Shown: piece after piece, positions 6,626 through 10,749 of the stretch
Layout of the letters: each line of letters begins with the position of its first letter
How positions within the stretch are numbered: the stretch's first letter is position 1
Source of the DNA: Neoconidiobolus thromboides FSU 785
Lineage: Eukaryota > Fungi > Entomophthoromycota
Length of the DNA stretch: 36,507 nt
Direction: 5' to 3'
NCBI GenBank assembly: GCA_025603075.1
Contig: MU626451.1
Coordinates: 1-36,507, forward strand
Translations under genes and position numbers: made by a program
Notes under the pieces: model-generated
Told to the model about the DNA's origin: nothing
Database searches by the model: none
The model's input: only the letters and a program-made list of their open reading frames with translations

Positions 6626-9600
6626 TTATTTCAATTTTAACTTTAATTCATTTATGGTATTCTCTCCCTTATGAATTCGGATAAAATATTCATTTGATAA
6701 TAAAAAGTAAGTTTGTTTCTTTGGATGGAGCATTAAGAAATTCAATTTTAGCCATTTATCGTTCACTGGTCCACTATATGGCATAGGATTTTTGAGTGAG
6801 TCTGGTTTTTCAATGTTACTAAGAAACTCTTGCACTTCTACTACAAACCTTTTTGGGAAGGTTATTACTTCATTGAAAGTGAAGGTATCTGGATTTAAAA
6901 CTAATAACTTTTCCATCCTTGGAAATTGTTTAACATTGCTCAATATATTGTTGTTGTAGTTGTTGCTTTGACTTTGTTTATAGAAGCCATCGCTAATCAT
7001 ATTTTTATTTGGACAATATTCAATGATTACAATTAGTTCACTTGGGTGATCTAAGATAATATTAATTAACCATTTAACAAATACAAGAAATACTTACTCT
7101 TATCAACTTCTGCCGCTTTATAGGGATACACTAATCTACCTTTAAGTTGTAAGTGAGACCAATAAGAATTTTCTTGTATATTGAAATCACGGGGTGTAAT
7201 AAGTAGCTCTAATTTATAAGATTTATAAGGAGAAAAGAAAACAGATGGTACTGAGCAAGGAATAGACAACAATCGCATAATAACATCGAGTAATAGCTCT
7301 AATTTATCCTAAGCAATTACATAAATGATTTAATTTATCAAGAATGTATTGTTAATAATACCTTTTCTTTTTCATAATATTTTTTTTCAAACAGTAACAT
7401 CAATCTATTATATCCACATTCTAGTGAAGAGTTCTTCACTATATTTAAACTAAAATATTAATAAATTGCTTAGTTAAATATTAAATTAGCTTACTTAGAT
7501 ATTACATTAGGTTGCACTTTAGGGAATACAGTATTTCCATGAATATCTTGAAACTCAATATTAAAAATAGCATCCAATGCAAATATAAAGACATATAACT
7601 CATCTAGCATTAATGACAAGCATAAAGAGGATTCTTTATCGTTTTGATATAGAAGAGTGGACAAATATTCTATTTTTTGGGCAAGTGATTTCATTTTGTC
7701 AAAGTCTTGAGTAAACTAATAAAGATTAGTTAAATATCTACTTAACTAACAAATCAGATTACCATATTATTATATAAACTTTCAATATCACGCTTCTTTA
7801 CTAAATTTTTTAATGCCATAATATTCTTAATATATTGAAACAAAATTTGTATTAATTCAACCCTTATTTCTACCCATAATGACATCAAAGGTATTTGACT
7901 ATACCCAGCAAGGTAATGAAGTGTCTAAATATGACCATTATAATATTATTACATTTTTAATAAAATTTTTACTTTGAAGCTATCTCTTGCTTGAACTAAT
8001 TTATTGCTACAATTATCAAGGTCGCCTATAAGGAACTTTTGGATGTTTTTAGACTCAAATGTTAATTTACAACTTGAAATATATTTGATTTGAGTTTCTG
8101 CTGCTGACCAGTATTTAAATCCTTCTGTATAAATCCTCGTAATTTCCGAGGTTGCCTAAAATTCTTAGCAACAAAATCTTTTAAAATAAATCAAAACATA
8201 CCCCGCCAGTTAACCTGGAAAAAATAAAATTAGAAACAGGGTGATTTCCAAGTCGAAGAGACATGATAGCAATGTCACACATAACTAAAGGATGGTTGGT
8301 TATTGAATCTACACCTGCAAAGGAATTAAGTTGCTCTCTCAGCCAAGTAGGTTGAATAAAGCCATTTTTTTTAGCTGAAATAACATCATTAAGTGGATTT
8401 CCAGCAGGGAAAAAATTTATAGCTATAATTATGCCAGCACAAAAGAGTTTGGGGTATTCTTGGAATTCAGCTATTTTAGAATCAGTTAAAATTGTTTGTT
8501 TTGTTTGAGGTGATAACTGAGTAAGATGGTTGTGAGCATATTCTTTTATCCATTCTATTACTAAACAATAAGCTTTGAGTTCAATCGTATCTTTTATATT
8601 TGACTCTAAGTTAGATACACCTAATGAATACAAGTCAATCAATAAACTTATATAAATATAGATTGTTTTCATAGTATCAAATTACCTTCTTCAAAATAGC
8701 ATCTTTTTAAAGTTTTCAAAATATTCAGTAATAAAAATAAATCTGTATAAAAATTAGATTCTAACTTTTTATAAAGCTTATTAAGTAATATTAAATAATC
8801 ACTTAATGTATTTAATAATATTGTAAGTTTATCATGTGGTGCCTTTTTATGTTTGATAAAAGACCTAAGCATACTCCAGATAATAAATATGCAGATTTTA
8901 ATAATATAGACTTTGGTATTTACTACAAAAATTAGTATATACTATAATAACAATTTTATAAATTTACTGTTTAACTTGTCATCTGGAGTAGTTTTTATAA
9001 GGGAATAAAATGATTGTATGACAGTTAAAATACTCGAATATTTTTTGGACAAAATGCAAATATCATTAATTGTGTCATCATCAACCAACAATATACATAA
9101 TAATTGATAGAGGTACATATTGTTTTCTTCTTTTATGTATGGTTTTATATAATTTTCAATAAATCGGGAAATAAGTTCCTTTTCATTTGACACTAAAGCA
9201 TTAATTTCTTCATTTAAATTTAATGAGTTTAACTCAATATTAAGGGTTTCTTCAAATTTGAATATTTGGATCCTCTGCTCCAAATCCATGGATTTTATAC
9301 CAAATTTTACTAACATCAAACATTTGCTTAATAATAATTCATTTTTATACCATGACTTCATGATTTGAAACAAAAATTCCATTTGATTCGGTTCAAAACA
9401 TAAACCTGACCTTGCTAATAAAATCAAACCTTCTATTATAGCTATTATATTACTTTTTTTAACATTTGGGAGTGTAGTTGAATATTCCATTAATAACTCA
9501 AATAAATAACTTGCCTATAATTTTTAGTTTGTTTCAATTGATTTTTTAATGTTTACCTGCTTAATTCTGTCCACTTCACTAATAGATGCTAACTCAGAAG

Positions 9601-10749
9601 ACACATATATTAAAATTGAAGGTATAGCACCATAAGTTCTAATATCCATACTAGCCAATAATTCCAAACAATAAGCATGTGCCTATAAACAATAAGTTTA
9701 ATATTGACTATAATTTAATTTTAACAGTTTTACTTTCATAGCCGAGTTCAAATGCCATCTAAAAGCCCTTAAAGTGTCAATAACTTTTAAATAAATATCT
9801 AAAGTCTCTGCTTTCTTTAACACTTTTTCTTTACTAAATGGATCTTTGCTTTCTTCACAATCCAATCCAAGCATATCTCCAAGGAATGGTAATATAAAGT
9901 GTACAAAATTATTATTTATTCCAATAAGTTTTTTGCTAAATGCCAACGCCTCTATTATCTCAAAATCTTGATCCGAGTTTAAACTTAATAATATCAAATA
10001 ATATATATAGTTATCTACTTCTATAGCATGACTTAAATTTTTGAGTATTCTAAAATTGAATATTAATAAACTCATTATTTTATGTACAATGGTATTTACT
10101 TAAGGCATAAAGTTCTAGCAACAAAATTGACTCTAAAATGAGCTGATGTGATATTTTTTACTGATTCTTTTAAATTTACATTTTCTTTGGTAATAAATTT
10201 TGAAATTTGTTTAAATGCATTATAAATGATATCATGAAAATAATCATTATCACAAGTGCTAAACTTAACAGATAAATCAATGCATATTTGATTCATTATA
10301 TCTGGATGTTGAAACTCAGACGCAATCCTTATATAGTCTTTAATACAATTTTCTACACTAGCATTATTTTTTGACTCAAGTCCTGATTTAAGTTTATCCA
10401 AAGTTTGTTTCAATTCCATTGGTGGTGGATCTAAACAGAATGGATTTGTTGGCTTAGCAGTTGTTGATTCCCTTCTGCTGCTATTGTAACTATAAGTCTG
10501 AGGATGTGATTGGGGATGTGACTGAGGATGTGGATGTGGATGATTTCTTTCGTAAATTGGACCTTGCATATATTGGAAATCTAGGTTTGGATTAGGAATA
10601 ACTTGGGGTGCTGGTTGCATGCTATCAGAAATCATTGATGGAGGAGGGTTAGTTGGCCTTCTTCCCCTCTTTTTTGGCCCATTATAGCTACCTCTTCCCC
10701 CTCTTCTTCCTCTATCGCTTCCCCTTTGATATCTGTGTTCGTCATTCAT
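6626..10749 (-). CDS. INTS7: Integrator complex subunit 7-like helical-repeat protein with N-terminal RGG/Pro/His-rich extension, about 11 introns
   Basis: Colinear matches to human INTS7 as I recall it: LDKLKSGLESKN~LMELDKGLRSGK; FQHPDIMNQICIDLSVKF~YPFPILINSAFLKLADVF; VARTLCLK|ILKNL~VARAITLRMLGSL; SLNSDQDFEIIEAL~SLDSHDNVEVEAA; IAIMSLRLGNHPVSNFIFSRL~IARQASRMGNHDMAKELYQSL; LLSIPCSVPSVFF~LLKVPLSFQRYFF; GPVNDKWLKLNFL~EPHNDYFSTQFL. Intron 10050-10099 joins the ORFs in frame; other introns only approximately placed. Confidence 0.8.

Follow-up and report, generated by a model that had tools for sequence, protein, structure and literature searches.

A transcribed, highly diverged INTS7-like gene of the zoopagomycete fungus Neoconidiobolus thromboides

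In human INTAC (structure 7CUN), the backbone is made up of INTS7 together with INTS1 and INTS2, and in the human structures INTS1, INTS2 and INTS4 are either direct neighbours of INTS7 or members of the cleavage module. The plant counterpart, the DSP1 complex, consists of DSP1-4 and CPSF73-I; it represents a reduced form of Integrator, and DSP1 of Arabidopsis is a relative of INTS7 from outside the metazoans. Integrator itself is described as a metazoan complex that has a reduced version in plants and is missing from yeast (PMC5079582, PMC10533338). Arabidopsis DSP1, being an INTS7 homologue, takes part in the processing of snRNA 3' ends, in which its partners are DSP2-4 and a nuclease of the CPSF73 type (PMC10533338); its role in the maturation of these ends has been documented (PMC10533338, PMC5079582). 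Concerning fungi, the literature searched yielded no paper on Integrator or INTS7 from this group, and an earlier description is possible.

Neoconidiobolus thromboides is an early-diverging, insect-associated, zoopagomycete fungus. The protein encoded at the locus described here has its best sequence match in the PDB with human INTS7 (7CUN chain G, 7PKS and 8RBX), N-terminus against N-terminus, and INTS7 is also the type of ESM-Atlas cluster nearest to it. The two proteins are of similar size and layout—a long alpha-solenoid, after which comes a C-terminal domain without helices, as far as the low-confidence model of the fungal protein goes. The differences from human INTS7 are nevertheless considerable: the fungal protein is longer by about 230 residues, about one in five residues are identical by eye over the sole alignable stretch of 140 residues, the helical-bundle (HB) and C-terminal domains are unrecognisable by sequence, and a disordered N-terminal extension of 112 aa with RGG, basic and HPQ elements has no counterpart in the human protein. 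With regard to the plant proteins, INTS7 clusters with the domains INTS7_N and INTS7_C_plants (1167–1322 aa) are found among the nearest ESM-Atlas neighbours, for the C-terminal half as well, whereas INTS7_C_plants itself has no match in the fungal protein. What the locus holds is a very divergent new representative of the known INTS7 family, and the corresponding claim, i.e. that the gene product is an INTS7 homologue, is considered highly likely on the basis of the sequence comparisons given below.

Gene model, transcripts and start codon

The window, i.e. the whole stretch of DNA from N. thromboides FSU 785 that was analysed (36,507 nt), is AT-rich with about 27% GC; RNA contigs were compared with its positions 6200–11100. 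On the minus strand, a chain of open frames covering positions 6626–10749 is joined by short GT..AG introns into one gene, the model of which comprises 12 exons with a CDS of 3585 nt and a product of 1194 aa. The features of the gene are as follows:

6626–10749, minus strand: whole INTS7-like coding region (gene model, RNA contigs and identity with the database protein P0001)
10749–10100, 10049–9734, 9682–9557 and 9514–8968, minus strand: exons 1–4 (gene model and RNA contigs)
8922–8686, 8620–8202, 8155–7973 and 7924–7763, minus strand: exons 5–8 (gene model and RNA contigs)
7715–7495, 7449–7362, 7308–7098 and 7050–6626, minus strand: exons 9–12 (gene model and RNA contigs)
6628–6626, minus strand: stop codon

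The 11 introns, 42–65 nt each, are without exception of the GT..AG type, the donors being mostly GTA and the acceptors mostly TAG. Every one of the 11 junctions is present as a joint in spliced RNA contigs of the public runs X1, X2 and X3, where CT..AC ends on the plus strand correspond to GT..AG on the minus strand; a single contig of 3995 nt from run X1 spans all of them, while run X2 covers ten and run X3 nine. Because the RNA contigs carry all 11 junctions, the existence of the gene, its transcription and its splicing according to the model are established. The earlier note, made from the letters of this DNA, had described a roughly full-length multi-exon gene at this place, with intact splice sites where traced; its extent proved exact, on the minus strand, by the gene model, the RNA contigs and P0001. 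An additional in-frame intron of 45 nt, at 8070–8026, was considered and rejected, being unused in every RNA contig.

When exon 4 was searched exhaustively with HMMER against 1.84 billion representatives, the sole protein returned was the database entry P0001 (1155 aa). Between Met39 and the last residue but one, P0001 does not differ from the 1194-aa model; it bears the NCBI name 'hypothetical protein K502DRAFT_325810, partial [Neoconidiobolus thromboides FSU 785]'. The annotation labels the protein merely as 'hypothetical' since its scores fall under the family thresholds, and the NCBI model, flagged 'partial', begins only at Met39. The transcripts of run X2 extend to position 10752 and therefore include an in-frame ATG at 10749, upstream of Met39; in comparison with P0001, this start adds an RGG-rich stretch and a PKKRGRR cluster. 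The part of the protein concerned is the following:

10414–10749, minus strand: N-terminal extension of about 112 aa (composition, AlphaFold secondary structure and X2 transcripts)

The extension is of low complexity, with 18% proline, 11% arginine and 10% serine, and carries, in addition to the RGG stretch and the basic PKKRGRR cluster, His-Pro-Gln repeats. The PKKRGRR cluster appears NLS-like, and the low-confidence AlphaFold model places no secondary structure ahead of residue 73 of P0001.

Relatedness to the INTS7 family

The spliced protein was compared with Pfam, with the sequences of the PDB and with the named clusters of the ESM-Atlas, these tests being partly independent of one another. 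Two features belong to the N-terminal half of the protein:

8783–10395, minus strand: INTS7_N-like alpha-solenoid (ARM/HEAT), model residues 119–593, interrupted by introns 1–4 (Pfam and AlphaFold)
9932–10404, minus strand: core alignable with residues 25–162 of human INTS7, model residues 116–256 (phmmer against PDB sequences)

In Pfam, INTS7_N (PF24436) was the sole family found at E<=10 on the spliced protein P0001, residues 81–555 of which are colinear with positions 3–446 of the 503 positions of the profile (E 4.1e-5, 23.3 bits). The piece comprising residues 70–330, taken alone, matched the same profile at E 1.7e-6 and 27.8 bits; both scores fall short of the curated Pfam cut-off for INTS7_N (gathering score 42 bits). 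It should be noted that the signal is seen with the spliced protein only, no INTS7 match having been obtained in the exon-by-exon Pfam scan. With phmmer, the same piece of P0001 (residues 70–330) searched against 177,635 PDB sequences had human INTS7 on top (7cun_G and 8rbx_g; E 0.011, 18.7 bits), the paired regions—residues 78–218 of P0001 and 25–162 of human INTS7—being colinear over about 140 residues, and the runner-up was an unrelated protein at E 0.39. The full-length protein gave no INTS7 match in the phmmer search of the PDB. Among the named ESM-Atlas clusters, ranks 1–12 for the whole protein were all occupied by INTS7 clusters, which come from plants as well as from chordates and arthropods, those at the head being at 0.96–0.97 with 226–229 of 256 features in common with the fungal protein and the twelfth at 0.89 with 172 shared; the HEAT families followed at 0.83. 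Such language-model neighbours come without an E-value.

The best profile match thus did not come from another HEAT/TPR family, an outcome that the earlier note had named as one that would speak against its reading: INTS7_N stood alone in Pfam, human INTS7 was on top in the PDB, and the 12 nearest named ESM-Atlas clusters were those of INTS7. The three tests on the spliced protein agree, so that the designation 'INTS7-like' stands, on sub-threshold scores.

With scores of this kind, an unrelated lineage-specific ARM/HEAT scaffold, e.g. one similar to Symplekin/Pta1, has to be weighed, the likeness to INTS7 then being that of a generic solenoid inflated by the AT-rich composition. Symplekin/Pta1 is itself a HEAT scaffold of a complex with a beta-CASP nuclease, that of mRNA cleavage and polyadenylation, and a weak match to SYMPK_PTA1_N (E 0.007–0.013) lies inside the same solenoid; furthermore, every INTS7 score is under the curated threshold and spurious cross-matches are known for solenoid proteins. 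The Symplekin match is, however, sub-threshold and positioned in the middle of the protein instead of at its N-terminus, and the C-terminal domain of Symplekin was not found, so that Symplekin/Pta1 was rejected as the family. More generally, Pfam yielded no second ARM/HEAT family at E<=10 for the whole protein, the matches to INTS7 are colinear and correctly N-terminal in two tests (Pfam and phmmer against the PDB), and in the ESM-Atlas INTS7 stands at 0.97, with a fall to 0.83 for the HEAT families that follow. An origin of the gene from an unrelated scaffold is accordingly regarded as quite improbable in comparison with its descent from INTS7.

Beyond the N-terminal solenoid, two further regions can be delimited:

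7270–8782, minus strand: middle helical region, model residues about 594–996, at the place of the INTS7 helical-bundle domain (AlphaFold helices and ESM features)
6629–7269, minus strand: C-terminal non-helical domain, model residues about 997–1194, at the place of INTS7_C (AlphaFold)

As for the former, INTS7_HB (PF24437) had no Pfam match in the whole protein or in its pieces, and residues 540–960 were also without a PDB match. As for the latter, there was no Pfam match to INTS7_C (PF22965) or INTS7_C_plants (PF22966). The phmmer search of the PDB with the middle and C-terminal pieces returned nothing relevant. NPL4, which matched the C-terminal region weakly (E about 1e-3, under its cut-off), was rejected as the family. 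When residues 600–1155 of P0001 were taken alone, the top ten named ESM-Atlas clusters were all INTS7, at 0.74–0.75 with 191–197 of 256 features shared, and the first clusters other than INTS7 appeared at 0.66; the ESM-Atlas statistics are uncalibrated for parts of proteins such as this one. The link of the C-terminal half to INTS7 is thereby one of language-model features alone. The earlier note had reported at least seven segments colinear with human INTS7 from the N- to the C-terminus; such colinearity was reproduced for the N-terminal domain only, and for the middle and C-terminal regions neither Pfam nor phmmer against the PDB gave an INTS7 match.

Concerning the architecture, the AlphaFold run was made without an alignment, and its pLDDT—37.5 for the full length and 32.7 for the C-terminal domain—is too low to judge the fold. 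In the full-length model (pLDDT 37.5), continuous helices extend over residues 73–958 of P0001 as an all-helical solenoid of about 880 helical residues. Beyond residue 958 there are about 200 residues without helices, for which the separate C-terminal model (pLDDT 32.7) has about eight strands; the C-terminal domain is thus probably beta-rich. The layout as modelled matches that of INTS7, i.e. an N-terminal solenoid, a helical bundle and a C-terminal beta domain.

Proposed role in an Integrator-type complex

According to the reading preferred here, the product of the gene would be orthologous to Integrator subunit 7 (DSP1 in plants), though highly diverged from it. It would be a putative nuclear alpha-solenoid scaffold with a C-terminal domain predicted to be beta-rich and, at the N-terminus, a disordered RGG/basic extension specific to the lineage. 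As in animals, the INTS7-like protein would most likely belong to the structural backbone of an Integrator-type complex; the complex would ride on RNA polymerase II, its INTS11/INTS9 endonuclease would cut the 3' ends of nascent snRNAs, and paused or unproductive transcripts would be ended by it. A rough probability of 0.62 is assigned to the INTS7-like protein working in an Integrator-type complex. We infer the membership in the complex, the nuclear location and the role in snRNA processing or termination from the human INTAC structures and from Arabidopsis DSP1, by analogy with which they are proposed. A part of the snRNA-processing machine of animals and plants that is absent from yeasts has very probably been kept in N. 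thromboides. Within the window, no other Integrator genes were found, and no snRNA genes either, the Rfam and tRNA scans being empty.

A broader proposal, put forward tentatively and at somewhat less than even odds, is that the Entomophthorales possess a near-complete INTAC-like Integrator, the subunits of which lie beyond the reach of routine annotation. Such a complex—with the INTS7 backbone, the INTS5/8 shoulder, the INTS6 phosphatase arm and the INTS9/11 cleavage part—would be responsible for snRNA 3'-end formation and for Pol II attenuation in place of an Nrd1-Nab3-Sen1 pathway. If this were true, it would be the first fungal system for studying Integrator, and the loss of Integrator would postdate the split of the zoopagomycete lineages from the line leading to Dikarya.

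Concerning the INTS7-like gene itself, an INTS7 orthologue that a zoopagomycete fungus expresses and that is under selective constraint would mean that Integrator was present in the fungal ancestor and was lost later; it would also help to date that loss together with the switch to other routes of snRNA termination. N. thromboides would offer, in addition, an organism with a small genome and short introns for the study of a minimal or divergent Integrator. The surprise for the specialist should be moderate, because comparative genomics and parsimony predict the retention of an ancestral complex and the databases may list such subunits already; Integrator subunits of early-diverging fungi may indeed be present in automated databases.

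Divergence and selection

The searches for homologues brought back the protein itself only. This applies to the exhaustive HMMER search with exon 4, which, owing to the poor conservation of this query, is weak evidence for the absence of homologues, as well as to word seeding against 5.8 billion proteins, a method blind below roughly 40% identity, for which the queries were the whole protein, residues 75–560 and residues 76–300. The metagenome locus scan yielded no homologue of the INTS7-like protein. Since the word seeding is blind below roughly 40% identity and exon 4 is poorly conserved, these null results are taken to reflect strong divergence and not missing orthologues.

The same divergence is, on the other hand, in favour of a reading in which the protein descends from INTS7 and has its place outside a canonical Integrator, either as a remnant scaffold in a reduced cleavage complex similar to plant DSP or in an unrelated nuclear assembly. 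Homologues were detected neither among the 5.8 billion proteins searched by word seeding nor by HMMER with exon 4, the HB and C domains are unrecognisable, and the RGG/basic extension of 112 aa, missing from human INTS7, might give the protein an RNA-binding role of its own. A descendant of INTS7 that has left Integrator is nonetheless judged unlikely, if less so than the unrelated scaffold discussed above, its C-terminal half being still INTS7-like by language-model features and the entire CDS being under purifying selection; the backbone role in an Integrator-type complex remains the preferred reading.

The selection can be seen from runs X2 and X3, assigned to a relative termed 'organism B', which carry a version of the INTS7-like gene diverged by 2–3%. 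Among the 39 coding differences to organism B listed, 27 are synonymous and 12 non-synonymous. Set against some 700 synonymous and some 2880 non-synonymous sites, these counts give a dN/dS of roughly 0.11, a value based on the differences listed and indicative only. By this indication, the INTS7-like gene evolves under purifying selection.

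Genes around the INTS7-like gene

The INTS7-like gene is tightly enclosed by a gene directly upstream on the same strand, encoding a MUS81-like endonuclease, and by a convergent neighbour at its 3' end:

10888-12293, minus strand, MUS81-like endonuclease gene (Pfam ERCC4 domain and MUS81 winged helix)
5838-6607, plus strand, convergent neighbour gene

The former matches the ERCC4 domain with an E-value of 3.8e-25 and the MUS81 winged helix with 6.6e-7, and its final intron (11064-11021) is confirmed by RNA. Only about 140 nt separate its stop codon from the INTS7-like ATG, the promoter and 5' UTR of the INTS7-like gene thus being very short. 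At the opposite side, just 18 nt lie between the end of the neighbour at 6607 and the INTS7-like stop codon (6626-6628). Since a single RNA contig from the public run X1 continues unbroken from position 6200 into the INTS7-like gene, the 3' UTRs of the two convergent genes must overlap. It should be noted that the RNA contigs of organism B, a relative diverged by 2-3%, exhibit a 1-nt deletion at 6613, i.e. within this spacer.

Other genes that can be recognised in the window are the following:

9-935, plus strand, patatin-like phospholipase in one long ORF
4570-5145, plus strand, exon with a RhoGAP domain
31357-32019, minus strand, RRM protein

Five further long ORFs of the window (14556-16046, 17399-18601, 22111-24252, 30108-31109 and 32962-33912) have no Pfam match.

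Ends of the INTS7-like protein

Two stretches of the protein deserve mention:

10635-10749, minus strand, N-terminal stretch upstream of the NCBI start, with an in-frame ATG at 10749
6629-7093, minus strand, weak sub-threshold Pfam match to NPL4 in the beta-rich C-terminal domain

The NCBI protein model, labelled 'partial', starts at Met39; the upstream ATG, which is covered by transcripts, adds 38 residues containing an RGG stretch and the basic cluster PKKRGRR, the latter being, from its sequence, a possible nuclear localisation signal. Concerning the C-terminal domain, its resemblance to NPL4 (profile positions 162-247 of 309; 17-19 bits; E-values from 8e-4 to 3.5e-3, all sub-threshold) is probably due to chance.

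An additional joint in organism B

The RNA contigs of the runs X2 and X3, both originating from organism B, contain the joint 7925/7974 alongside the canonical 7924/7973. Both skip 48 nt, the additional one being shifted by one base and having non-canonical ends; it is probably explained by ambiguous alignment at the exon boundary or by a difference between strains there.
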